Positions 26,501 to 45,679 of a DNA stretch of 64,000 nucleotides are shown in pieces. The DNA comes from Hyalangium minutum (GTDB taxonomy: Bacteria > Myxococcota > Myxococcia > Myxococcales > Myxococcaceae), in the NCBI RefSeq assembly GCF_000737315.1, contig NZ_JMCB01000008.1:310001-374000 (forward strand). The letters are read 5' to 3'. Numbering within the stretch: the stretch's first letter is position 1; each line of letters starts with the position of its first letter. The position numbers and the translations under genes are program-made. The notes under the pieces are model-generated. The model saw only the letters and a list, made by a program, of their open reading frames with translations. It made no database searches and was not told the origin of the DNA.

Positions 26501-28185
26501 ACGGTTTAGTTCACAGCGTGGAGATGTACGATCCGGCCACGGGAACGTGGAGCCCCAGGACGCCTTCACCGCTCACTTGGCCCAGGGCAACGTTGTTGCC
26601 CTCCGGGAAGGTGCTGATCACTGCAGGTGCGGCCACTACCGAGCATGACAAAGCTGAGGTGTACGAAGACACGGGAACTCGCCCGGAGTGGCGTCCTGTC
26701 ATTAACGCACCGGCCATGCAACACCCCGGAGAGACATTCCACATGACCGGTAGCCTCTTGTGTGGCCTCTCGGAGGCAAGCAGCGGTAATACTCAGAGTT
26801 CAGCCACGAATTTTCCCCTGGTGAGCTTGGTGGCGCTCGAGGGCGGAGCGCTAACACGTGTCGCGTCCCTGGACTCGTACTCTGGTACACACGTGACTGG
26901 ACGCACGCCGCAGGTGACGAGTGGCTATTACATCGTGTCCGTGATGGCTAATGGCATCCACGGGGGGCAACTGGTACTCGTGGAGGGGGCTGGCCCTGCA
27001 GCGCCTGAGCTGACCCTGCCTGAGCCTTTGGTCAACACCTCGAAGCCCGTCATGGGCGGTACGGCGCAGCCCGGTAGCAGGGTGGTGGTGTGGTTGGATG
27101 GGAAAGTAGCCGGAGCCGCGACGGCAGGTCCCCAGGGCTCCTGGCGCTTCACTCCCGTCACCGCGCTGGCTGAAGGATTCCACCGAGCCGTAACCACTGC
27201 TTCGGATGAGGTGGGCAACATAAGCCCTGACTCCGAGGCTGTCGGCTTCACGGTAGACACCGTGCCCCCAGAGTCGCCGGTGGTAGTTGAACCTGGGGAC
27301 TTCGTTGCTACCTCCACTCCTGTGATTCGTGGCACGGCGGAGCCGGGAAGCATGGTCGAGGTGCGGCTGGATGGAGAAGTGGTGAGAACAGTCAAGGCAG
27401 CTACGGATAGGACTTGGAGTTTCGCCTTAGTCACAGCGCTCGATGACGGCTCTCACTGGGCCGATGCCACTGCTCGTGATAGTGCAGGCAACATCAGCCT
27501 TGTCTCTGGGGGACTCCAGTTCACAGTAGATACTGTCCCTCCACAAGCGCCGGTGGTGACGGAGCCCAATGGCCTCGTCCCTTCTTCGACACCTGAGATT
27601 CGTGGCACGGCAGAGCCTGGGAGCACGGTGAAGGTACGGCTGAATGGAGAAGTAGCGGGAAGCGCCCTAGCGGGTGCGAACGGTGCTTGGCATCTCACTT
27701 CACTCATAGCGCTTCTAGACGGATCATACCAAGCCGAGGCCACTGCCCAAGACAAAGCAGGTCTTGTGAGCGCTAAGTCTGAGTTCCTCTCCTTCATCGT
27801 GGACACTGTGCCCCCTGAAGCGCCGGTGGTGACAGATCCTGGAGGCTTCATTACCACTCCCACCCCTGTGATTCGCGGCAAGACGGCGCCTGGGGGCTGG
27901 GTGAAGGTGTGGCTGGACGACGATGAGTTGAACGCTGAACGGAGAAAGGCAGACATGGTGGGGGATTGGCACTACACTCCAATTACAGCGCTGAGGTTCG
28001 GATCTCATTCCGTCTTCGCCATTGCCTTGGATGACGCAGGCAATCCCAGTGCTCGAACACAACACCGGTTCGCCTTCCAAACGAGCCATTATGGTTGGGG
28101 GTGTACCAGCGCCCCGGCCCTTCCCGCCACATGGGTCTTCTTGGCCATGGTTTGGTCCCTCTGCAGGCGCTACCGCGCGCGGTGA
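23518..28185 (+). CDS. Surface protein with 21 Kelch repeats, 4 Ig-like repeats and a MYXO-CTERM-like anchor
   Basis: 21 HTATLLPSGKVL-type units counted, plus 4 P..PVV..P....STPVIRGTAEPGS-type units. Ends GWGC...hydrophobic...RRYRAR. Confidence 0.9.
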   Translation: MCSSTNPRVKVVPWFALALALAWIACGGASQDGDEAVQPKGLKVQMLPDASGEQSSPTGSLSTPRFEHTATLLPSGKVLVAGGVGPPGDLSSAEVYDPVTGVWSHTGSMATARICHTATLLASGKVLVTGGEGQNGLLDSAEVYDPVTGAWSLTDSMTTGRSCHTATLLPSGKVLVAGGGSGGLLGSAEVYDPVTGVWTPTGGMVTARSWHTATLLPSGKVLIAGGSDPNEPFEYLNSAEVYDPVTGMWTPTNSMATARQFHTATVFASGKVLVVGGLGLNDANAEVYDSDTGRWEPTGTPTMSHNRHTATLLPSGKVLVAGGGGSAMFRDGAEVYDPDTGTWSRMADLVTVRMLHTATLLPSGKVLLTGGLSRIPLDTAEVYAPDTGTWNSTGALAMARAFHTATVLPSGKVLLAGGVGSDARLDGAEVYAPDTGAKSSTAPLGTARASHTATPMISGKVLVVGGNGPSGLLDSAEVYDPATGEWSTTGALAAARASHTTTVLPSGKVLVVGGNGPSGLLNSAEVYDPATGVWSSTGALATARAFHTATLLHSGKVLITGGTGSSGPLDSAEVYDPVTDVWSPTGALATGRARHTATVLPSGKVLVAGGWGPSYPVSSAEVYEPATGTWSSTGTLATARYWHTATLLPSGKLLVTGGAGSNGPLNSSEVYDPGAGSWSFTGTLLTVHYGHTATLLPSGKVLVAGGVGSSGPLDGMELYDPGAGGWSFTSAVIRPLNNGHTATLLPSGKVLVAGGDDLNDSISNAQVYDPATGDWRLTGALATTRAWHTATLLPSGKVLIAGGNGPNGLFGSAEVYDPGTGVWSITGSMATARAWHTATLLPSGKVLIAGGYGPNGPLDSAEVYDPTTGGWSMADSMATARQFHTATLLPDGKVLVAGGQGPSSTLFSAEVYDPATSAWSPTSAMSTARVNHTATLLPSGKVLAAGGFENSSVEVYDPVTRAWSSANSMAEARRMHTATLLLSGKVLVIGGVGTNGLVHSVEMYDPATGTWSPRTPSPLTWPRATLLPSGKVLITAGAATTEHDKAEVYEDTGTRPEWRPVINAPAMQHPGETFHMTGSLLCGLSEASSGNTQSSATNFPLVSLVALEGGALTRVASLDSYSGTHVTGRTPQVTSGYYIVSVMANGIHGGQLVLVEGAGPAAPELTLPEPLVNTSKPVMGGTAQPGSRVVVWLDGKVAGAATAGPQGSWRFTPVTALAEGFHRAVTTASDEVGNISPDSEAVGFTVDTVPPESPVVVEPGDFVATSTPVIRGTAEPGSMVEVRLDGEVVRTVKAATDRTWSFALVTALDDGSHWADATARDSAGNISLVSGGLQFTVDTVPPQAPVVTEPNGLVPSSTPEIRGTAEPGSTVKVRLNGEVAGSALAGANGAWHLTSLIALLDGSYQAEATAQDKAGLVSAKSEFLSFIVDTVPPEAPVVTDPGGFITTPTPVIRGKTAPGGWVKVWLDDDELNAERRKADMVGDWHYTPITALRFGSHSVFAIALDDAGNPSARTQHRFAFQTSHYGWGCTSAPALPATWVFLAMVWSLCRRYRAR

Positions 28186-28229
28186 TGGAGGGTGTCTTGG
28201 AGCATAGGGGATGCGTAAGAATGCCTGAC

Positions 28230-28525
28230 ACAAATCAGGATTGAGGCCTCGGAAGAGTATCAGGCAGCTGATTGAGCCACGCGTTGGTACGCTCCACCAC
28301 CCAGCAGTGCTGTCCTCGCCGCTGTTTCGACTCGATGCCGGGCCGCAGGATTTGGGAAGTGAGACCGCGTCAGCGCAAACCCCTGCGGTTCTTGCGTGAA
28401 GCGTACGGCTTGTCCGCATGTAGTTTGCCGGGCCGATGTCGGGGTGATCAGGGCGCTGCTTGACGTCGGGCACCGCCTACTGCAGGAGGGACCAGTTCGT
28501 GGGTGTCGTGGACTGACGGAGCCCA
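28230..28525 (-). mobile_element. IS5-family transposase relic (frameshifted)
   Basis: Fragments VHDTHEL, RHRPGKLHADK.YASRKNR, RPGIESK.R.G.H.WVVERTNAWLNQ across frames. Confidence 0.8.
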
Positions 28526-28712
28526 AGCGCACCCGAAGCCAGGTGCGGGGCCTGCGATGACCACGGGTTCCGCGATGTCGCACATGTGTCGCAGGAACCC
28601 GCGGAATGTGCTGGGACGAAACGGGACGCGGCGGGATACCGACTCCAATCATTCCGGGCGGTTACGATCTTCCAATAACGAAGGATTTCGATCCTGTCGA
28701 TCGCGACGAAGC

Positions 28713-28735
28713 GCGGGAACGAATCCCGCGCTCCA
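28713..28735 (+). repeat. Degenerate tmRNA-3'-like att core, copy 2
   Basis: GCGGGAACGAATCCCGCGCTCCA. Preceded by a block (28570-28668) homologous to the one preceding copy 4. Confidence 0.55.
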
Positions 28736-29035
28736 AAGATCGCCGTAACTTCCGCCTATGGTTATGACGAGTGCGGCTTGCCGCCCGCAGCAGAGAATGA
28801 GGTACTCTCTTGTTCAGGAGCCCAGCGGCAGAGCGGAAGTTGGTGCCACGTACACCCATCGGGGTCTTGAGGTCGAGCAAGGGACCAGGAAGAGCCATCG
28901 ACAGCGATGCTGATCCGACCCGCGCTCGCCTGATCGCCTCTGTGCACCAAGGATCGCGCCCCCCGCGATCGAAACGCCGCGCTTCCGGAAGCTCGTCTCC
29001 ACACGCACAGCACTACCTCGCCTTGCTCTGCGAGG

Positions 29036-29109
29036 AAGTGTCGTCCGGAGAGAAGAAATGCTGGAGCTAGCAGCCGGAGAGTCCCTACTCTTGGGGTAAA
29101 ACACCTGCA
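29036..29109 (+). repeat. 74-bp dispersed repeat, copy A
   Basis: 67/74 identical to 43866-43939. Confidence 0.85.
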
Positions 29110-29187
29110 CAGACGTCTTCCCCAAAGAGGACGGCAGAAGGATTGGGCCTGTGAGCACCTGCCAATTGGGGCCCCCCGAGGACGAAC

Positions 29188-29814
29188 ATGCCCCTGGAAC
29201 GAGTTGCCGCCTCCCTATTGTGCGCTCTGTTCATCTCTTGCAGCACCACCCGCCAACTCGCACCCGCCAACCCTGAAGAGCTGACCCGCTACGTTCTTCT
29301 CATCCGGGAGCTGCCCGACGGCACTGTCACCCATTCCTGGAAACCCGCAGAGGAGATGGATCTGTCGCAGTACCGATTTCTTGCCAGCACGCGTGGCTCA
29401 GCTCGGCCCATCGTGCCAGTCATGGCCGGGCGACAGCGCGACTGCGATAAAGAGAATGACGAGTGCATCGACAAATGTATGAGCCACCCTCTCGCGCCAG
29501 GGTACGGGCACATCACTTCCAACAGAAAGAAAGGTGGTAAGGCGGCTTACTGTCGCGAGCAATGCTGGCAGGCCTATCGCGACTGCCTGGAAGTCGAAAA
29601 GCTGCGCCCGCAGGAGTTTACGGCCATCGATTTCGCAACCGATTGGCTGAAGCGCCACCACAAAACAATTCTGGTGGGGAGCGTGATCACCATCGCGGGA
29701 GTTGCCTTTGTCGTGGTCTCTGCCGGAGCTGGACTGGTCATCCTTGCCCCCGTCGTGATCCTGGCCAACCCTTCGGAGATGCATGAGCCCTTCATGGCCG
29801 GAGTGTCGCCATGA
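29188..29814 (+). CDS. Cys-rich lipoprotein with C-terminal hydrophobic hairpin (candidate toxin)
   Basis: Lipobox LFISC. CDKENDECIDKCM...YCREQCWQAYRDC. TM-like tail. Overlaps the next gene (ATGA). Confidence 0.7.
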   Translation: MPLERVAASLLCALFISCSTTRQLAPANPEELTRYVLLIRELPDGTVTHSWKPAEEMDLSQYRFLASTRGSARPIVPVMAGRQRDCDKENDECIDKCMSHPLAPGYGHITSNRKKGGKAAYCREQCWQAYRDCLEVEKLRPQEFTAIDFATDWLKRHHKTILVGSVITIAGVAFVVVSAGAGLVILAPVVILANPSEMHEPFMAGVSP

Positions 29815-30404
29815 CGATTGCAAGACAGATGCTGGAGACCATGGAACTCCTGGGCAGGCACCATGAAGAGACCGCTTCCGCCGAAGAGAAAGAGCGATTC
29901 TCCATGGCGCTCGACGCACTGGGCTTCATCTTGGCCTTCGGTCAGACCTACGGCTTTGAGGAATATCGCCAAGACGTCGCGGCCCAGGGTCCGCCCGTCG
30001 TTATCGCAGCCTTCGACACGCGTGAGAAAGCGGAGAGCTGGCTGAACCACCACCCCGACCCTCCACACCACGCCAACATCTTGATTGCAGGAGAATATTT
30101 TCTCACTGCCTATGCCCCAGACCTCAACCACCGCGCGATTCTCCACGACCCTGCGTTCGCCCATTACCTCAAAGAAATGATTCAGGACGGGATTCCGGCC
30201 CCGGTCGCCACCTTCAACACCCTTGAAGAGGCCAACACATGGCTCCAGGACCAGCCTGAGCCTCCGCGTCAGGTCTTCGTCTCCGTCGCAGGCGAGTATT
30301 ACCTCGCGGTGTATCACTACAAGGTCAAACTCCGTGCGCTTTACCCCGTCTCCATGGCAGCGAAGTCGGCGCAGGGAGACGAGGCAGCGCCTCGCAGCGG
30401 GTGA
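29811..30404 (+). CDS. Hypothetical protein with internal duplication (candidate immunity/partner)
   Basis: Two homologous units: AAFDTREKAESWLNHHPDPP..IAGEYF and ATFNTLEEANTWLQDQPEPP..VAGEYY. Confidence 0.7.
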   Translation: MTIARQMLETMELLGRHHEETASAEEKERFSMALDALGFILAFGQTYGFEEYRQDVAAQGPPVVIAAFDTREKAESWLNHHPDPPHHANILIAGEYFLTAYAPDLNHRAILHDPAFAHYLKEMIQDGIPAPVATFNTLEEANTWLQDQPEPPRQVFVSVAGEYYLAVYHYKVKLRALYPVSMAAKSAQGDEAAPRSG

Positions 30405-30440
30405 CGAGAACCTACCCATGAGGTAGGATGCTGGGCGCCT

Positions 30441-31880
30441 ATGTCGAGCTCCTCTCTGTCCTCGCTCCACCCCGCTGCGCTCCCTCCCGGCACCCCCGTG
30501 GGCCCCTTTCGCATCCTGGAATGGGCCGGACGGGGCGTCCACGGCGCCGTGTACTGCGCCGAGCGCATCGGCCGGGAGCGCCTGCCTCCCGTGGCCCTCA
30601 AGCTCGCCGTGCTCCCTGAGGACCCGCGCTACCTCCGAGAGCAGGAGCTGCTGTCCCGCTCGCACCACCCCCACATTCCCCGGCTCGTGGGCGCAGGCCT
30701 CTGGGTGAGCCCAGAGGGCGCTCGGCACCCTTTCTTGGCCATGCAGTGGATAGACGGCATGCCTCTGTACGACTGGGGCCGCATGTTCCACCCCTCGGCG
30801 CAACAGCAACTGCGGCTGCTGGCCCAGGCCGCCCTCACCCTCCAGTACCTCCATGCGCAGGGCGCGCTCCACCGGGACTTCAAGGGCGACAATCTCCTGG
30901 TGCGCCGCTGGGACAGCCGCCTGTTCCTCATGGACTTCGGCTCCAGCATCTACCCCGGTGCCGACACGCTCACCCCACAGCAACTGCCTCCGGGCACTCC
31001 CGCGTACCGCTCTCCCGAGGCCTGGCTCTTCACCCTGCAGCCGCGCCATGCCTCGGAGCGCTACCGGGCCGGGCCCGCGGATGATGTGTTCGCCCTGGGC
31101 GTCACCGCCTGCGTGCTGGCCACCGGCAGGTACCCGGAGATGGGCGTGCCTCGGAAGGATGAGCAGGACCGCGCGTTTCTGGATGCGCTGAAGCTGCCGC
31201 GCGCCTTGTTCTCCGCCCAGGTGGCGCCGCCGCTGCGCGAGCTGATTCTGCGCATGCTCGCCATTGCCCCCAAGGAGCGCCCCACCGCGGCCGAGCTGGC
31301 TCCCGCTTTGGAGCAGGCCGCGGAGGCGCTCGGCCCCTCGACCCCGAGCCTGCGTGCCCCCCAGCCCGAAGCAGGCCGAGCGGACGAGTTGGAGGCGCAG
31401 CGCGCTCCTCCGGGGCTCGTGTGGCGGCCCTGGCTCGTGGGGGCCGCGGGTGCCCTGGGCCTGTGGGCCGGAGCCCTCGTGCAGCCAGAGCCGCCGCCGG
31501 TTCGCGAAGAGCCTCCTCGGGCGGCTCCCGCCGTGCCCCTGAGCGCCACGCCGGACGCGGCCGAGACGGACACCGCGGGGCTCGGCGAGCAGGCCTCCCC
31601 TGCGCCGCAGCAGACTCCTGCGCCCGCCGCCGCGCGGGCCGTGGCGGAGAGTCTCCCCGAGCCCTCCGAGGGCCAGGCCCAGCCCGACAAGAAAGGCCGC
31701 TGCCCTCACCCCCAGCAGGTGGTGCTCAACGGGGCCTGCTGGGCCCGCCTGCGGGGAAGCCGCGAGGAGTGCGATGCCGCGGACGGCCAGATGTACCAGC
31801 AGGCGTGCTACGTGCCCGTCTATCCCGGCAAGCAGGGCCGTCCGTCCACCTCGGGCGCAGGCCGTCCCCATCCGCAGTGA
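30441..31880 (+). CDS. Ser/Thr protein kinase, membrane-anchored
   Basis: GRGVHGAVY, VALK, HRDFKGDN, DFG, GTPAYRSPE. TM segment and Cys-rich tail. Confidence 0.9.
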   Translation: MSSSSLSSLHPAALPPGTPVGPFRILEWAGRGVHGAVYCAERIGRERLPPVALKLAVLPEDPRYLREQELLSRSHHPHIPRLVGAGLWVSPEGARHPFLAMQWIDGMPLYDWGRMFHPSAQQQLRLLAQAALTLQYLHAQGALHRDFKGDNLLVRRWDSRLFLMDFGSSIYPGADTLTPQQLPPGTPAYRSPEAWLFTLQPRHASERYRAGPADDVFALGVTACVLATGRYPEMGVPRKDEQDRAFLDALKLPRALFSAQVAPPLRELILRMLAIAPKERPTAAELAPALEQAAEALGPSTPSLRAPQPEAGRADELEAQRAPPGLVWRPWLVGAAGALGLWAGALVQPEPPPVREEPPRAAPAVPLSATPDAAETDTAGLGEQASPAPQQTPAPAAARAVAESLPEPSEGQAQPDKKGRCPHPQQVVLNGACWARLRGSREECDAADGQMYQQACYVPVYPGKQGRPSTSGAGRPHPQ

Positions 31881-35304: not shown

Positions 35305-35384
35305 ATCGATGGGGCACTCATTACGAAACGGCTCGTGTCGTGAGCCACTCGCCGACGGGTTACGCCGTCGGTCGGCCCCGCGGC

Positions 35385-35913
35385 TACTTCAGCGCGTCGG
35401 CGAGAGTCGGGATCTTGCTCGCCTTGCGTGCCTGCTCGACCTCCGCGAGCTGCTTGTCGGTCAGCTCGACGTGCGTCCAGCGTTAGCCGCTGATCACCTT
35501 CCCGGACTGACCGTCCTTCGGGGGAGCTGCTTCGGGTAGACCTCGCAGCGGATCAGCAGGTGGGTTCCCGCCTGCCGCTCGTCGAAGAACTTCTTCAGCG
35601 CGGCCGGGTTGGCGAACTCGAGTTCGTCAGCGCCGACGAGGGTCATCAGGAACGACTTGAAGCGCCCGCCGCCGCCCTTCTTCTGATCGCTCAGGTTCTC
35701 GACATAGTCGACGGTCTCGCTGACTCGGCTCGGGGCCTCGCCGCCCGGAAGGGGCTCGGACTCGCGAACCTTCAGCTCGCCGATCGCGCTGTCGCCCTTG
35801 AAGCCCTCCTTCGTGCGGATGACCTCCACGGCGAGCAGGTAACGACCGAAGCGGGGATAGCGGCCCCCCGCGGCAGCGGGCGCGGTCGCGATCTTCGTCA
35901 ATGCACTGTTCAC
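35385..35913 (-). pseudogene. Prophage-type hypothetical gene (possible ssDNA-binding/replication accessory), inactivated
   Basis: MNSALTKIATAPAAAGGRYPRFGRY... Frameshift near 35520 and a TAA, then the second frame continues RWTHVELTDKQLAEVEQARKASKIPTLADALK*. Hairpin CCGACGG/CCGTCGG at 35352-35371 downstream. Confidence 0.5.
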
Positions 35914-36139
35914 GTTGCTTGCTTCCTCTCTTTGGGTGAGTGCCAGCGACGCGGGCTTGCGACCGCTGGCACACGCCTAAATTGGTGCGCTTGCGGCGCG
36001 TGGCTCAGACTTCCGCGAGTGGCTCAGATGATGGAATCTTCCTAGATAGGGAAGTGTCCCTTCAGCCGATTACCTCACCGCTATTGGTTTCGGATACCAT
36101 GTGGCATCAAAAAGCAACTAACGCCAACGAGAGGTCGCA

Positions 36140-37111
36140 ATGGAGAATCCCGCAAGGACGATATTCAACTCGATCAACACTGATCAGGATGTGGGACGCC
36201 TGATCAGGACGCAGGTGGAAGATCTTTATGTTGACTTCAAGACCAAGCAAGATCACGCCATTTCGGACGTAGATCAACATCTCCAAGCAGTGCTTTCCAA
36301 GGCAATTGCGGGATTCGCCAATGCCGATGGAGGAGTGATTGTCTTAGGTGTCAATGCCCCCCAAGGGCAGCCGCCTTCCTTGAAATTGATCGCGCCACTT
36401 AATGACTTCGAGCAGGAAGTTAACTCGTATATTCCTCGCTCCACTTCCTTTCCTGTCGCAGGGGCGGAAACGAAAAAGGTCCCTTTCCAAGGACAAGCAG
36501 GCGGCGTGGTGTTGGTGTACGTCCCCAAAAGCGACCTTGCGCCGCACTGTAGCATGAAGGATCGCCGTTACTATCAACGGATCGGCGACTCGTTCTTGCC
36601 GATGGAGCACTACCAAATTGCAGACATGTTCGGACGGCGCCACCAACCGCGGCTCGTTCCCTATGTTGAGGCTAGCCGCGATATCAACTCCCGTGGAGGG
36701 ATGGAGTTGATCGTTGGCGTCAAGAACGTTGGAGTGGCGATCGCTAGATACGTCTATTTGTCCGTGGAGGAGCGTGCACAATTTTCGTTTTCAGATTACG
36801 GCATTAGCGGCAACGGCCATTGGGGCTTGCCGCCCTTTGTTGGCGGGAGCCGGCTAAGTGAATATCGAGGTGGTGTTGATCATGTTATTCATCCCGGAGT
36901 TGCCCTGCCTGTCACAAAGATGAGAGGTGCCGTCAGGGTTGATACCCCGGCCACTTTGTTGGAGGAGTACTCACAGATTACAATTGCTGGTCGTGTCGTT
37001 GCAGAGGGGGCCGTGTTGAAAAACTGGCGTGTGTTTCTTTCTAGAGCACAGATACAGCAAATTCTTAGCGGGCCCAACCAATCGGTGGTCCTTGATAGTA
37101 TACTGACTTGA
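36140..37111 (+). CDS. Schlafen/AlbA_2-domain protein with unknown C-terminal beta-rich domain
   Basis: EDLYVDFK, KAIAGFANADGGVIVLGV, VYVPKS..PH, RYYQRIGD. Lower GC than the flanks. Confidence 0.85.
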   Translation: MENPARTIFNSINTDQDVGRLIRTQVEDLYVDFKTKQDHAISDVDQHLQAVLSKAIAGFANADGGVIVLGVNAPQGQPPSLKLIAPLNDFEQEVNSYIPRSTSFPVAGAETKKVPFQGQAGGVVLVYVPKSDLAPHCSMKDRRYYQRIGDSFLPMEHYQIADMFGRRHQPRLVPYVEASRDINSRGGMELIVGVKNVGVAIARYVYLSVEERAQFSFSDYGISGNGHWGLPPFVGGSRLSEYRGGVDHVIHPGVALPVTKMRGAVRVDTPATLLEEYSQITIAGRVVAEGAVLKNWRVFLSRAQIQQILSGPNQSVVLDSILT

Positions 37112-37151
37112 TTCTTAATGGACTTGAACCTGGAGTGATCGTCGGCCCGCG

Positions 37152-37520
37152 CTAGAGCGCGGGCCAGTCGTAACTCGCGAAGCAAAGCTTTTGCGGCGTG
37201 CCTTCGGTCTGCTCAATGAAGCGCGCGAAGTCTCGAGCCTTGCGGAAGGCTTCGATCAGCTCGTCGGTGTGCTGATACAGCTCGACCTCGACCTCGACCT
37301 CGACCTCGTCGGCGAGTTGCCCTTGACGGTGACACCGCCCGATCGCCTGTTCCCACGCGGCGCCGTCGGCGGGCGGGTTCACGAAGAGCATCCGCGAGAA
37401 CGCGGTTAGGTTCTTCCCCGTGCCATGCGCCCGAAGGGACGCTACGATCGACCGCTTGCCGTTCTCGCGGATGCTGGTGCTCAGCCGCTCAAGCGAGGAA
37501 ACCTGCGGCTAATGCACGGG
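37152..37520 (-). pseudogene. C-terminal relic of a prophage SF2/SNF2-like helicase
   Basis: SIVASLRAHGTGKNL...WEQAIGRCHRQGQ (helicase motifs V-VI). Upstream part disrupted. Confidence 0.65.
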
Positions 37521-37913
37521 CATCAGATCGCGAAGGTGCTTCCTAAGCATCACGCCGCGAAGGTCGCCGACGAGTGGGGAGTTCCCGGGCTCACGGTCGC
37601 CGTCGGGCACTCTCACCGGCCGGGGATGCACGTTCGGCCTGGCCGCGAGGGCAACTGCCGGGCGATCGCGGTCGGCGCGGGCCGCACGCTGGATCCCGAC
37701 TGGGTGAAGGGGCGCCCGAGAGGATGGAGAACGAGCTGCTCGTCGCGTATCTCCTGCCGACTGGGCACGTCGCGGCTTACAGCGTGCGGCTCGTTAGGGG
37801 CGCGTTTCTCTGGGGGGTAAGGTCTACCGCTGAGCCGCGGTCGAGAAAGCGTCTCGCAGTCAAGTCGTGACCGAAGCTAACAGCCCGGGTGGGGCTTCCT
37901 GATCTGGTCTGCG

Positions 37914-38834
37914 GTGCCCCTGCGCGCTCGCAGAACCTGCTACCGTTCGCCCAATTCAGGAGGTCACCTTCATTTGAGCCAACCTGCTAGATTGGCCCTT
38001 GTGCTCGCGGTCGTGTGGGGAGCTGCGGCACGAGGAGAGACGCCTTTGAGCAGTCGTGCGAAGCGAGAGCGGCCTGTCGCAGTCGTCGGCAAAGCCGACG
38101 AGCCTCTGCCCGAGATCCACGTCGCGCCGGACGCGATCACGCTGCTTTGGTTTCCTGCCGACATCCAGCGGAAGACGCTGACGGTTGACGAGTCGCGGAT
38201 CCGGGTGCTGGACACAGGCACGCGCTCGATCATCGTCCAAGCTGTGCCCGACTACCGGCTCGAGGAGCGGCACGAACTCGGGGTCTTCTTCGCCGACGGG
38301 CAGGCGCCCGCTCGGGCCGCGTTTGCGCTCGTCATGGACCCCGCAGAAGTCGACACGCGGATCGACGTGCAACGCCCCGAGCTGCCGACCGGCCCCTGTC
38401 CGGCCGAAATGCAGCGCGCCGCCCCCCGACCCGAAGACTTCGTGCTGAAGGGCTTCGTAAACGCGCGCGGCATCCCGACAGTCGTCGTCCCGAAGGTTGC
38501 GGACAGCGAGCGGGGCTTTTCGTCGGAACCCGGTGTCTCCTATCGCGGCAATGGGTGGGCGATAGTGGAGGTGTGGATCCGCAACCTGTCCGGTCGGTCA
38601 CCGTGGACGCCGCGCGACGTGGTGCTCAAGGACAAGGCGGGAGAGAATCTGCACGCGCGCCTTGTGACGGACGCCAAAGGCCCGGTTGCTCCGGGGGATC
38701 GCGTGCGCGTGCTCGCCGTTCTCGACCGAGCGGCCCCGAGCGTTGGGCCTGTCGTCGTCCTGGAAGTGCTCGGGGATGACAATCGCAGCTTCGTGATTCC
38801 CCGTGTGACACTTCCGATGGAGGGAAAGCCATGA
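37914..38834 (+). CDS. DUF2381-like myxobacterial protein
   Basis: EIHVAPDAITLLWF...FFADGQAPARAAFALV...EVDTRIDV. Coupled (ATGA) to a kinase. Start uncertain. Confidence 0.75.
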   Translation: MPLRARRTCYRSPNSGGHLHLSQPARLALVLAVVWGAAARGETPLSSRAKRERPVAVVGKADEPLPEIHVAPDAITLLWFPADIQRKTLTVDESRIRVLDTGTRSIIVQAVPDYRLEERHELGVFFADGQAPARAAFALVMDPAEVDTRIDVQRPELPTGPCPAEMQRAAPRPEDFVLKGFVNARGIPTVVVPKVADSERGFSSEPGVSYRGNGWAIVEVWIRNLSGRSPWTPRDVVLKDKAGENLHARLVTDAKGPVAPGDRVRVLAVLDRAAPSVGPVVVLEVLGDDNRSFVIPRVTLPMEGKP

Positions 38835-40583
38835 TCGCGCGCCTTATCCGGCTGCCGTGGGGCGCCGTTATCGACGGCTGGCACGTCCTGAAGGAACTCG
38901 GCGACGGCGGTTTTGCTGTCGTCTACCTCGCCGAGAAGAATGGGCAGCGTCGGGCGATCAAGGTGGCGCGGCACCGTGACGCCAGCGGGGACGACAAACA
39001 GACACACGCTCGATTGAAGCGCGAATTGACGGTTCTTTCGATGCTGGACCATCCGAACATCGTCGAGCTTTGTGGCCATGGGTACGCGGAAGCGGGCAAT
39101 TTCTACCTTGCCCTTGAGTATGTGGACGGCTGGACGCTCGGCGAGTGGAAAGAGCGCAAGCACCCCACCTTTCACGAAATCTTGAGCGTCTTTGTGAAGA
39201 TCGCCGAGGCCCTGCTCTACATGCACAGCCGGGGCATCCTTCACCGAGACTTGAAGCTCGCTAACGTGGTGATCCGGAAGAGCGACGGCAAGCCGATCAT
39301 CATCGACTTTAGCTGCGCGACCTACACGCAAGCGGCGGACCTGACCGAGAGCGGATTGCCTCCCGGAACGGATCGGTTCCGCGCGCCCGAGCAGTTCAAG
39401 TTCCTGCGCGAGCACAGAGACGAGCACCGGGCACGGTACGCCTTCCAGGTGGCCGACGAGATCTTCGCAGTCGGCGCGATGCTCTACGAGCTGCTGACGG
39501 ATCCGCGACCGACAGAAGCGCGCGCGCGGGAGACTCTGAACAACCCCTTCGACCCGCCTGCACCCGCGAGAGATCTGAATGCTCGCGTTCCCGAAGCGCT
39601 CAGCGACCTAGTCGAGAGCATCCTTTCGCGCGATCCCAACCTGCGACCCGTCGATACCGAGGCACTTCGGCGCGAGCTGGCCGAGCTTGAGGCAGATCCG
39701 GGAGCTGACTACCAAGCGCCCGCGCATCCCCCGTCAGAGCAGCGGCAGCCCCAGCCGGTCGGTCAGAAACCGGGCCGATGGAGCAAGCTGCGTGCGTTGG
39801 GCGGCAGGGTGGTTGCCGACGTTCGCCGCTTGGGGAAGGTGCTCGCGGCAGGCGCGGTTGCTGCTGTCGTGCTCGCTGCTGTCGTGGCTCTCTGGATGCT
39901 CCCCAGTGCGCAGACGCTCCCAAGCGCCGCGCCTGCCGCCCGTCACACCTGCCCCTGATATGTCACCTGCCCCCGCGCCTGTGGTGGTCACAGGTCCGGC
40001 CCTCGCCCCAGAACAAAAGGAAGGTGCAACAGTGAAGACACAGCCACCCGAAGCCCCGAAGCAAGCACGCAGCTCGCGCGAGCGCGGGCAAAAGGCTCCC
40101 CCAAGCGCGGACGTATGCAAGGGGCTGTCGCTAGCCGCTGCCTTCGCTCTCGGGTGCACCGGGGTTCCCGTCAAGCCCGATCCGTTTACCTGCCCCGAAG
40201 GCGCTCAGCGTGCGATGCGCGAGCTTCACTGGAACGACGGCGATCGCTTGAGTCTTCTGATCGACGACCGGCACGGGGTGGAGGAGAACCTTTGGTTGCG
40301 CCCGGGTGACACGGTCGTCGGGGTTGTTCCGGAGTACGCGCGCGGGCAGAAGGCAGCCCCTCCAGGAACACGCTTTCTCGGGGGGAAGGTGTACGTCGTG
40401 CCCGAGAAGACGGCGAGCGGTCACCCGGGTCGAATCATCGTGAAGTACGAGCGCGTGAAGCTGCCGCGTCAAGACGAACTGCCCGTCTGCTTTGTCGTCG
40501 ACACGACCGCCGACGAGTTGAAAGACGGTGCCGGTAGAACCGCGAATGGCGACGCTGGACTCGCGGTCGACTGGTGGCCTTGA
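38831..40583 (+). pseudogene. Ser/Thr kinase, frameshifted after the TM segment
   Basis: Kinase frame 38831-39958 (GDGGFAVVY, HRDLKLAN, DFS). The C-terminal domain continues in another frame to 40583; shift near 39915-39935. Confidence 0.75.
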
Positions 40584-40747: not shown

Positions 40748-41884
40748 ATGTCAGCAATCGAGTTCAGGCTTCCCAAGGGGGCGATTCTGTTCTCCAAGGG
40801 CGGGTTTTCTTACGAGTTCCGCGCGGACTTGGGCGAGGCGCATCACGGCCTGAGCCTCTTTCTCGCGCGGCGTCGCACGCCGGAAGGGCACCCTCGCGGG
40901 AAGGTGCTGCTCAAGGCGGTCGGGAGTCCGCGCGGCGGGGCTCAGGAAGGGCGGCGCTTCGACAAGGCACGGGCGAAGCTCGAAGAGCAAGTGCGTCTCG
41001 CGACGTACCTTCAGCACCCGGGCATCCTCCGTGTTCACGATCTGCACAAGACCGAATCGGCTTGGTACGTGATCACCGACCATCCGGCCGGGCAGGATCT
41101 TGACGACCTGATGGGACTCGCGACCGAACTAGACCGATGGTTCTCGCCCTTCTTCACGCTGTACGTTGGCGCGGCAGTCGCGAGTGCCCTTGAGCATGCG
41201 CACAATACAACGGACGACAAGGGGAACCCGCTCGGTATCGTCCACCGGGCGATCGACTTGGGGCACATCTTCGTCGACTGGGAGGGTCGCGTTCAGGTCT
41301 CCGACTTCGGGCTCGCACTCTCCACACTGCCGGGCCGCGTCGCCTCCACCGTCCGCCGCCCGCAGGGAGATAGCTACTTCGCGTCGCCGGAAATGCTGCT
41401 AGGCGGCAAGGTGGATGCACGCTCGGATCTCTTCGCGCTCGGGCTCGTCATGCTCGAAATGTCCACAGGGAGGAGCCTGCTCGATACCGATATGGGTGTC
41501 TCCGACGCGGCAAAGGCGGCACTCTCGAAGAAGCAGCTCGCCCGCGTGAAGCGCGCGATCAAGCGCGCCAAACTGGCCGGGTGTGAGCCGACGATCGAGC
41601 AGACGATTTGGCGCGCGGCGACCTATACGCAGGGCGACATTGACGCGGTTACAGCGAAGCTCCCCGAGAACCTGCGCGTGCCGCTGAGCAGGCTCCTTCA
41701 GCACGACGCGGCAGCGCGCTATCAGTCGGCGGGAGAGCTGGCGACCGAGCTGCGCGGCTGGCTCTCACAGGTGGACTTTGGCAAGTCTCAAGCTGCCGCC
41801 GAGCTGAAGAAGCTGAAGGCGGACGCGGGCGCGGTCATGGTCGACTTGGAGTTGCAGCGCACGGACGACAGCGCGTCGGCCTGA
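40748..41884 (+). CDS. Ser/Thr kinase-like protein (probable pseudokinase)
   Basis: Kinase fold with DFG and YFASPE, but the catalytic loop reads HRAIDLGHIF instead of HRDxKxxN. Confidence 0.8.
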   Translation: MSAIEFRLPKGAILFSKGGFSYEFRADLGEAHHGLSLFLARRRTPEGHPRGKVLLKAVGSPRGGAQEGRRFDKARAKLEEQVRLATYLQHPGILRVHDLHKTESAWYVITDHPAGQDLDDLMGLATELDRWFSPFFTLYVGAAVASALEHAHNTTDDKGNPLGIVHRAIDLGHIFVDWEGRVQVSDFGLALSTLPGRVASTVRRPQGDSYFASPEMLLGGKVDARSDLFALGLVMLEMSTGRSLLDTDMGVSDAAKAALSKKQLARVKRAIKRAKLAGCEPTIEQTIWRAATYTQGDIDAVTAKLPENLRVPLSRLLQHDAAARYQSAGELATELRGWLSQVDFGKSQAAAELKKLKADAGAVMVDLELQRTDDSASA

Positions 41885-44883: not shown

Positions 44884-45585
44884 CTAGGGCAAGCGGACGC
44901 CGCGCTCGGCCTCGAAATGGCGCCGCCAGCGCGCCCGCAGGTTGCTTTGAGGCACTCCGTGAGGCTCGTCGAGGAACTCGGCGGCGAGGATGCGGTCGGT
45001 TCGAAAGTGCCGGAAGGTCGATCGAAGCTCGCACCAGGCGGCGAGCAGCCGCACCGTCTCGGCATAGCCGATGACGACGGGCCAGATCGTCCGCTCGCTC
45101 TCCCGGCCATGGTCGTCCCGATAGCGGATGTGGATCTTCCGCCCGCTGCGGATCCACGCGCGGGTGCGGGCCATGTCCAGCCCATCCACGGCGGCGCTCA
45201 TGGGCGGCGGGGCGCCGATGGTCGGCTCGGCGATGAACGGGCGCAGCCGTTCCGGCACGACCGCGGCGATCTTGGCCACGAGGTCTCGCGCCGCGCTCGC
45301 GAGCTCGGCGTCGCTTCGCTCGGCGACCCACTGCGCGCCGAGCACCGCGGCCTCGAGCTCAGCGGGCGTGAGCATCAACGGCGGCATGTCGAAGTCGCGC
45401 TCAAGTACGTAGCCCAACCCCGCCTCGCCGCGGATCGGCACCCGCTGTCCGATGAGGTCCGCGACGTCGCGATAGACGGAGCGCTTCGACACCTCCAGCT
45501 CCGCGGCCAGAGCGCCAGCCGTCACCGGGCTGCCGGAGCGCCGGAGAATCTGGATGATCTGGAACAGACGATCGGCGCGGCGCAT
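44884..45585 (-). CDS. YafY-type HTH-WYL transcriptional regulator
   Basis: MRRADRLFQIIQIL...EVSKRSVYRD...GEAGLGY, IRY...RTIWP...AWCELRSTFRHFRTDRI. Confidence 0.92.
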   Translation of the reverse strand: MRRADRLFQIIQILRRSGSPVTAGALAAELEVSKRSVYRDVADLIGQRVPIRGEAGLGYVLERDFDMPPLMLTPAELEAAVLGAQWVAERSDAELASAARDLVAKIAAVVPERLRPFIAEPTIGAPPPMSAAVDGLDMARTRAWIRSGRKIHIRYRDDHGRESERTIWPVVIGYAETVRLLAAWCELRSTFRHFRTDRILAAEFLDEPHGVPQSNLRARWRRHFEAERGVRLP

Positions 45586-45679
45586 GGGGCGGTTTCCTGC
45601 TGACAGCATGCTGGCAACAGCCCTTCGCTACAAGCGGGCCACGGTCACAGCAGTGGCCGCCCCCCGAAGGAGGACACGC

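Follow-up and report, generated by a model that had tools for sequence, protein, structure and literature searches.

An intact Schlafen nuclease gene with an Ig-like C-terminal domain in a prophage remnant of Hyalangium minutum: a candidate single-gene anti-phage system

The DNA analysed here, referred to as the window, is a stretch of 64,000 nucleotides from the myxobacterium Hyalangium minutum (NCBI RefSeq assembly GCF_000737315.1, contig NZ_JMCB01000008.1, positions 310,001 to 374,000 of the forward strand). The subject of this report is a gene within it that codes for a Schlafen protein of pSlfn5-type architecture, flanked on one side by the pseudogene of a prophage gene for 176 amino acids (aa) and on the other by the remnant of a helicase gene (Table 1). 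The GC content of the Schlafen gene is 0.527 and that of its third codon positions (GC3) is 0.568, against 0.64-0.71 and 0.77-0.95, respectively, for the flanking genes and a GC content of 0.666 for the whole window. The only Pfam match of the product is PF04326 (SLFN_AlbA_2), covering residues 27-155 and profile positions 1-117 of 118 (E=3.7e-12, 47.2 bits against a cut-off of 25.3 bits), in agreement with the original prediction, made from the sequence without database searches, of an intact low-GC Schlafen/AlbA_2 gene. No match was found in NCBIfam, and in the PHROGs search the protein matched only the N-terminal part of a family named 'DNA helicase'.

The surroundings of the gene were compared among five myxobacterial copies, that is, the window and the loci denoted L082 (Myxococcus hansupus CP012109), L086, L087 and L088. 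The element at L087, on another contig, serves as the intact reference and carries a low-GC antisense Schlafen gene in the same slot. Its genes are arranged in the order DNA methylase, 186-aa gene, 57-aa gene, DNA polymerase A, 176-aa gene, Schlafen, 636-aa helicase, PD-(D/E)XK exonuclease, N6/N4 methyltransferase, helix-turn-helix (HTH) repressor-like gene, VapE-type primase-helicase and sigma-like gene, of which nine are on the minus strand while the Schlafen, repressor-like and sigma-like genes are on the plus strand. The full-length L087 helicase matches phrog_62 'DNA helicase' at 3.8e-17, and the M. hansupus element adjoins a phage integrase gene and an excisionase-like HTH_17 gene. This synteny bears out the predicted antisense position inside a phage-type replication module. 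Both neighbours are pseudogenes, as had also been predicted: the 176-aa gene has a frameshift near codons 126-139, after which codons 126-175 run on in another frame with a stop, and only codons 537-635 of the helicase gene are left, nothing upstream of this remnant being matched by the L087 helicase in tblastn. The prophage-homologous DNA remaining in the window thus amounts to about 2.1 kb (35390..37481). No tRNA or Rfam family was detected by scans of the whole window, indicating that it holds no attachment-site tRNA.

In all five copies the Schlafen gene occupies the same slot, antisense to both flanking genes, with a GC content of 0.51-0.53 against 0.65-0.70 for those genes. It is intact in three (the window, L087 and L088). 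In L082 the gene is split by DDE_5 and IS3-type transposase genes, codons 1-22 (L082:7237-7302) lying 2.7 kb upstream of the remainder (L082:10001-10906), and in L086 it is frameshifted. The annotation treats the split gene of L082 as intact, with a 301-aa product named 'helix-turn-helix domain-containing protein'.

Table 1. Features of the Schlafen locus in the window (positions in the window; residue numbers refer to the Schlafen protein)
Feature	Position	Strand	Remarks
Second low-GC open reading frame (ORF), 159 aa	34825..35304	+	GC 0.51; ORFan; flanked by the host TMEM175 gene and by the 176-aa pseudogene, at the 3' end of the latter
Pseudogene of prophage 176-aa gene	35390..35916	-	86-88% aa identity to L082/L087 over codons 1-139
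Tandem motif, two direct copies of G(C/A)GTGGCTCAGA (the GAGTGGCTCAGA motif)	35996..36028	+	Intergenic, upstream of the Schlafen gene
Ribosome-binding site GAGAGG	36129..36134	+	5 nt ahead of the ATG; with the ATG, invariant in 4/4 aligned myxobacterial copies
Schlafen-Ig-like coding sequence (pSlfn5-type architecture)	36140..37111	+	Complete, 323 aa plus stop, ATG start; from ORF list, Pfam, homologues and AlphaFold2 (AF2)
Catalytic motif E27-x4-D32-x-K34 (EDLYVDFK, aa 27-34)	36218..36241	+	From alignment, SLFN14/SLFN12 positions and Ex4(E/D)xK
FANADGGVIVLGV core, aa 59-71	36314..36352	+	Invariant N61; acidic D63, candidate third active-site acid; from conservation
Inter-domain helix MEHYQIADMFGRR	36602..36640	+	M155 invariant; E156, A161, D162, F164, G165 and R167 at least 90%
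Ig-like beta-sandwich, putative phage sensor (aa 168-323)	36641..37108	+	From AF2, Foldseek and profile
3' remnant of SNF2-type helicase, codons 537-635 of 636	37173..37481	-	tblastn, 87% identity to the L087 helicase

The N-terminal domain retains both motifs named in the original prediction, the Schlafen acidic-lysine motif and the FAN..GG..VLGV core, and the string quoted there for the C-terminal domain, LIVGVKNVGVAIARYV, is present at residues 190-205. In an alignment of 45 family members, E27, K34, N61, G65, G70, P129, R147, M155 and N196 are invariant, and an acidic residue, D or E, stands at positions 32 and 63 in every row listed. The helix between the domains spans residues 157-167 in the AF2 model, and its sequence MEHYQIADMFGRR is one of two peptide patterns that retrieve relatives across phyla. 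A search of PDB sequences with the single protein gave only marginal matches to SLFN12 (E ~0.15), and it took the family profile to place E27, D32 and K34 onto E206, E211 and K213 of human SLFN14, the second of these positions being the one replaced in the E211A mutant of PDB entries 9uie and 9jr9. The same three residues also match the equivalent E-x4-E-x-K of SLFN12 and SLFN13. D63 matches the D of FANTDGG in SLFN12, the counterpart of the core in SLFN13 and SLFN14 being FANTQGG; we take the residue equivalent to D63 to be catalytic in SLFN12 and SLFN13.

The full-length AF2 model, built with the family alignment, has a predicted local distance difference test score (pLDDT) of 89.4, and its N-terminal half matched in Foldseek the N-domains of SLFN13, 11, 12, 14 and 5 and the tRNase domain of SAMD9, with probability 1.0 or 0.99 and E-values of 4.5e-4 to 1e-2. 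Judging from the motif, the candidate third acid and the modelled fold, the protein is predicted to be a competent nuclease. The mammalian tRNA/rRNA endoribonucleases SLFN11, 12, 13 and 14 thus share the fold of the catalytic lobe and its aligned acidic residues with the window protein. In the eukaryotic Schlafens, however, two AlbA-like lobes make up a horseshoe-shaped N-domain, which is followed by a linker and, in group III, by a helicase, while the window protein consists of one lobe and an Ig-like domain, and the profile alignment with SLFN12/13/14 is significant only in their C-lobe region (about 75 residues, chain residues ~200-290).

The C-terminal domain (residues 168-323), modelled alone, is nearly all beta with high confidence (pLDDT 93.5; predicted template-modelling score, pTM, 0.88). 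The domain had been described as beta-rich and unrecognised, and only the first half of this description stands, since the AlphaFold/Foldseek check that had been proposed gave a confident Ig-like beta-sandwich, which is the published sensor type of pSlfn5. The Foldseek matches were exclusively Ig-like sandwiches, generic and weak (E ~1e-2, template-modelling score 0.4-0.5), and included TRAP-beta, adaptin/GGA ear (GAE), the macroglobulin (MG) domains of complement C3/C4 and alpha-2-macroglobulin, and integrin ectodomains. When the C-domain profile was scored against 1.84 billion cluster representatives, 740 proteins were found at E <=1e-3 and 405 at E <=1e-10. Among the best 150 of the 740, the sandwich is nearly always located at residues ~170-320 of proteins of 305-345 aa, following an N-terminal region of about 170 aa, the rest of these 150 being shorter and probably fragments. 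Because of this fixed place in proteins of about 320 aa, the sandwich appears to occur essentially only in fusion with a Schlafen domain.

The same combination of domains is known from a recent catalogue of prokaryotic Schlafens, comprising 5,930 proteins in 55 domain architectures, in which classes are set by domain composition and fusions to Ig-like domains form the class pSlfn5, about 3.9% of the total (Perez Taboada et al., Nat Microbiol 2026, PMC13056530). RorSlfn5 of Raoultella ornithinolytica protects E. coli against T5; the escape mutations of T5 map to the tail assembly chaperone, to which RorSlfn5 binds directly, and the exchange of Ig-like domains transfers the trigger specificity (PMC13056530). 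RorSlfn5 is a Mn-dependent tRNase that cleaves the anticodon arm at positions 30/31, this activity being abolished by E15A/D20A, and its predicted C-terminal Ig-like sandwich resembles integrin ectodomains and a complement C5 domain (PMC13056530).

The window protein resembles the pSlfn5 proteins RorSlfn5, PagSlfn5 and SfoSlfn5 in being the product of a single gene, with an N-terminal single-lobe Schlafen nuclease and a C-terminal Ig-like sandwich. The Ex4(E/D)xK motif has the same spacing (E27/D32 in the window protein against E15/D20 in RorSlfn5), the structural matches are of the same kind (integrin, complement), the C-domain has diverged further than the nuclease, a partner gene is missing, and there are individual cases of relatives in defence or mobile settings. 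The window protein differs in its size, 323 aa (presumably a mass of roughly 36 kDa) against the 43.1 kDa reported for RorSlfn5, and in an N-terminal extension of about 12 residues, folded into two short helices. In addition, its host is a myxobacterium and its carrier a prophage replication module, and its trigger need not be a tail assembly chaperone.

Based on this likeness to an experimentally studied system, we consider it probable that the window gene encodes a prophage-borne, single-protein anti-phage Schlafen nuclease of pSlfn5 architecture, a sensor-triggered tRNase. The original prediction of a stand-alone sensor-nuclease as a candidate anti-phage system is upheld in this sense, by analogy of architecture, even though the idea itself is not new. 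The gene may be regarded as antisense cargo (a 'moron') of a temperate phage of myxobacteria, located in its replication module, and would have outlived the H. minutum prophage after almost all of the latter was deleted. By analogy with RorSlfn5, the C-terminal sandwich would bind a protein of an infecting phage; this binding would release the N-terminal nuclease (E27, D32, K34, D63; Mn-dependent), and the released nuclease would cut tRNAs in the anticodon arm, so that translation stalls and the phage yield falls. For the window protein, RNA cleavage, trigger and protection are inferred only from this analogy. PARIS AriB, PrrC, RloC and other anticodon nucleases lead to the outcome predicted here, a translational stall after the phage-triggered cutting of tRNAs in the anticodon arm or loop, but are multi-component systems with unrelated nuclease folds (Toprim, HEPN); AriB is the protein with which RorSlfn5 was compared by its authors (PMC13056530). 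The Slfn effector is shared, too, by Slfn-HisKinase(-HTH), which is the commonest class, DUF262-Slfn (EcoSlfn7), Cash and SLFN-pAgo, but the sensor or regulator modules of these systems are absent from the window protein. Cash is Csx15-Slfn activated by cA4 (PDB 9ylu), and CbCash was matched by the window family profile at E=7e-5.

Several observations weigh against an anti-phage role of this kind. The structural matches of the modelled C-domain are weak (E ~1e-2), and the assignment to pSlfn5 is by architecture, the Ig-like domains being putative homologues. Only 2 of 7 pSlfn systems tested protected against the phage panel, and while 69.6% of pSlfn genes have a defence gene at a distance of 10 kb or less, about 30% are away from such genes (PMC13056530). 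No recognisable defence system was detected in the window beside the remnant, where PADLOC gave generic Ser/Thr kinase and WYL matches. No family member was found by tblastn among the 50,697 phage genomes of INPHARED. The inactivation of two of the five sibling copies indicates that the gene is dispensable, and the defence genes counted near its homologues (see below) were tallied without a matched control, so that the tally is not called an enrichment.

The 30% of pSlfn genes located away from defence genes would equally suit a nucleic-acid-binding regulator or some other non-immune protein of the AlbA type. The names of the homologues in NCBI and UniRef ('helix-turn-helix domain-containing protein', 'AlbA family DNA-binding', 'ATP-binding protein') point in the same direction, but they are generic labels for PF04326 proteins, and 'ATP-binding' and 'helix-turn-helix domain-containing' are misleading here: no HTH, HATPase or other second domain was found by Pfam or NCBIfam, which also places the protein outside the Slfn-HisKinase(-HTH) class. 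Since, furthermore, the model contains a Schlafen fold and a beta-sandwich only and the full catalytic motif is conserved, we regard a non-immune role of this type as very improbable.

The rates of change of the two domains were compared next to each other. The mean pairwise identity within the family is 45% for the N-domain and 29% for the C-domain; among the five prophage copies the nuclease domains are 75-90% and the sensor domains 46-71% identical. The ratio of non-synonymous to synonymous divergence (dN/dS) was calculated for two pairs of prophage copies, those in which synonymous divergence is not saturated. Between the window and L088, the closest intact copy, it was 0.15 for the N-domain (dS 0.29, dN 0.042) and 0.56 for the C-domain (dS 0.35, dN 0.197), and between L087 and L082 it was 0.18 (dS 0.55) and 0.44 (dS 0.46), respectively. 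Being below 1 in both domains, these values indicate purifying selection on the gene, with a C-domain that changes much faster, its rate at non-synonymous sites being three to four times that of the nuclease domain. The suggestion that the intact state of the gene reflects selection is therefore supported by dN/dS but must be qualified, two of the five siblings being broken by IS insertion or frameshift.

The fast change of the C-domain bears on a second explanation, in which the Schlafen RNase is active but the sandwich serves for oligomerisation or substrate binding, the activation being achieved otherwise, for instance by a nucleic-acid cue, by translation stress or, as in toxin-antitoxin systems, through the loss of a labile inhibitor. 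Purified RorSlfn5 is a hexamer, and its authors leave open which of the domains is responsible for the assembly (PMC13056530). The Ig-like matches are generic, and the pTM of the full-length model is only 0.68 despite the high pLDDT, leaving the relative arrangement of the two domains undefined. A rapidly changing domain, however, fits the tracking of a variable ligand better than a structural module, no conserved neighbour is present that could act as an antitoxin, and in pSlfn5 it was the swapped Ig-like domain that moved the trigger specificity (PMC13056530). This explanation is accordingly considered rather improbable, though it is the strongest of the rivals.

A third possibility is that the gene served the phage itself, by cleavage of host tRNAs after induction or in the control of replication, and that the remnant copy is neutral and intact by chance. 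The constant slot in the replication module (5/5 copies), the two copies already broken and the lack of flanking defence genes in the window speak for such a role. The antisense orientation and the deviating GC content (0.52 against 0.65-0.68) in every copy are those to be expected of cargo rather than of a core gene, and relatives of the gene occur without phage genes, beside Wadjet and within DISARM. Moreover, dN/dS has stayed well below 1 since the split from the closest intact copy, and the flanking genes bear multiple lesions while the 323 Schlafen codons bear none. A phage-serving role is thus judged unlikely.

Some of the homologues have settings in keeping with an anti-phage nuclease. 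In 5.8 billion protein clusters, 53 relatives of about 320 aa were found, nearly all of 300-350 aa with PF04326 as the sole Pfam domain. The homologue of Bdellovibrio reynosensis directly follows Wadjet genes (jetABCD; JetB, JetC and JetD domains) and lies less than 10 kb from an integrase-like gene and a BubE/ThiF/multi-ubiquitin locus. In a Bdellovibrionales metagenome-assembled genome (MAG) the homologue is cargo of an integrative conjugative element, with a type IV coupling protein on one side and an integrase on the other, and in an Eisenbacteria MAG it is located between DrmMI and DrmA of a DISARM locus. Full-length homologues of about 28% identity are carried by megaplasmids of the Bacillus cereus group. 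Further PADLOC matches among the neighbours of 18 loci include type II methyltransferases, mad3/mad8, AriA-like, DrmD, JetC and a type IIG enzyme. After all-against-all comparison of ORFs, no gene family recurred within 3 kb across 19 loci except for the prophage synteny and integrases; the Schlafen gene is therefore stand-alone. The proposed PADLOC check did not recognise the Schlafen protein (PADLOC-DB v2.0.0 of 2023, no match at E up to 1), a result that is uninformative because this library predates the Schlafen defence papers. The same holds for the empty NCBIfam search, as Schlafen defence is later than, or missing from, these libraries.

No member from Enterobacterales was present among the matches of the plasmid search, the C-domain profile or the homologue clusters. 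The plasmid search retrieved Bacillus, the clusters of ten distant matches bore the names Paenibacillus or Brevibacillus or no name, and a word-indexed search with the C-domain profile gave two rows, neither from Enterobacterales. The family of about 320 aa, with its 740 cluster representatives, extends over Myxococcota, Bdellovibrionota, Acidobacteriota, NC10 and Bacillota. It is possible, but at present we hold it as a tentative idea, that this Slfn/beta-sandwich family is a lineage apart from the enterobacterial pSlfn5, an independent fusion sensing another class of phage proteins, and that in myxobacteria it represents a fast-diversifying superinfection-exclusion allele with a fixed hotspot inside the replication module in one family of temperate phages, beside a second variable cargo slot. 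If true, this would offer a first way into the study of conflicts between phages, and between phage and host, in Myxococcota.

Elements that share 84-97% identity in the flanking genes have Schlafen proteins of only 61-75% identity, indicating rapid divergence or allele exchange at the fixed slot. GC3 is 0.52-0.59 in all five Schlafen copies, against 0.81-0.97 in the flanking prophage genes, and this low value persists without drift toward the host composition although dS is about 2 (saturated) between some of the copies. Its cause may be repeated allele replacement from outside or a compositional constraint.

The general picture is unchanged because both class and mechanism had already been described in 2026, and the novelty is limited to a new phylum and a new carrier for a known class. 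Phage defence in myxobacteria has been little explored, and the window gene offers a concrete single-gene candidate, open to testing in Myxococcus xanthus with the existing myxophages. The five prophage copies, three intact and two broken, form a natural allelic series by which recognition by the Ig-like sensor could be mapped.

Upstream of the Schlafen gene, the tandem motif (Table 1) recurs as an inverted GAGTGGCTCAGA copy at 35341-35355, beyond the far side of the 176-aa gene. The GTGGCTCAGA/GAGTGGCTCAGA motif is kept upstream in L086, L087 and L088 in one or two copies each, and an invariant TAAAT precedes the first copy of the motif by about 40 nt in the window and the sibling elements. 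The motif could be an operator or promoter element for the divergent genes. Promoter and terminator scans around the Schlafen gene gave nothing above shuffled expectation.

The second low-GC ORF, of 159 aa, has no homologue in the 5.8 billion clusters and no family match, and its membership in the prophage element is uncertain. As an ORFan that is absent beside every homologue, it was rejected as a partner of the Schlafen gene. Related elements have unrelated low-GC genes in the same slot, which separates the polymerase gene from the 176-aa gene, namely one of 332 aa in L088 (L088:749-1747, +) and one of 137 aa in L082 (L082:6051-6464, +). This suggests that a second variable cargo hotspot flanks the 176-aa gene.

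On the other side, a 131-aa ORF (37425..37820, +) lies in unassigned DNA between the helicase remnant and a DUF2381 gene; it has a weak, sub-threshold match to the calcineurin-like phosphoesterase family Metallophos_2 (E=0.039) with a GHSHRP motif and may be a gene fragment. A link to the Metallophos gene beside the Bdellovibrio homologue was rejected because the two lack similarity. Three Ser/Thr kinase genes (~30441-31880, 38831-39958 and 40748-41884) and the DUF2381 gene (38001-38834) surround the remnant. The PADLOC matches of these genes are strong but generic (PD-T4-6, mad6, MkoA and PglW kinase domains) and, as myxobacteria have many kinases, are not to be read as defence systems. A WYL/HTH_11 regulator gene (~44884-45609, -) and a Y2-type transposase gene (~46597 onward, +), 8-10 kb downstream, hint at further mobile DNA in the window. 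The GC content is lowered to 0.59-0.61 in the region 28000-30500, where three small overlapping genes without Pfam matches are called (~29188-30404).

Two repeats were noted within the helicase remnant. The hexanucleotide repeat (CTCGAC/GACCTC)n at 37281-37309 encodes EVEVEVEVE, while the helicases of L087, L082 and L088 have EVE or EVEVE at that point, indicating a small repeat expansion within the pseudogene. A perfect 16-nt inverted repeat, AGCATCCGCGAGAACG at 37387-37402 and CGTTCTCGCGGATGCT at 37460-37475, separated by 57 nt, is located just inside the end at 37481, 6 nt from where the helicase homology stops, and may be a scar left when the remaining prophage was deleted.

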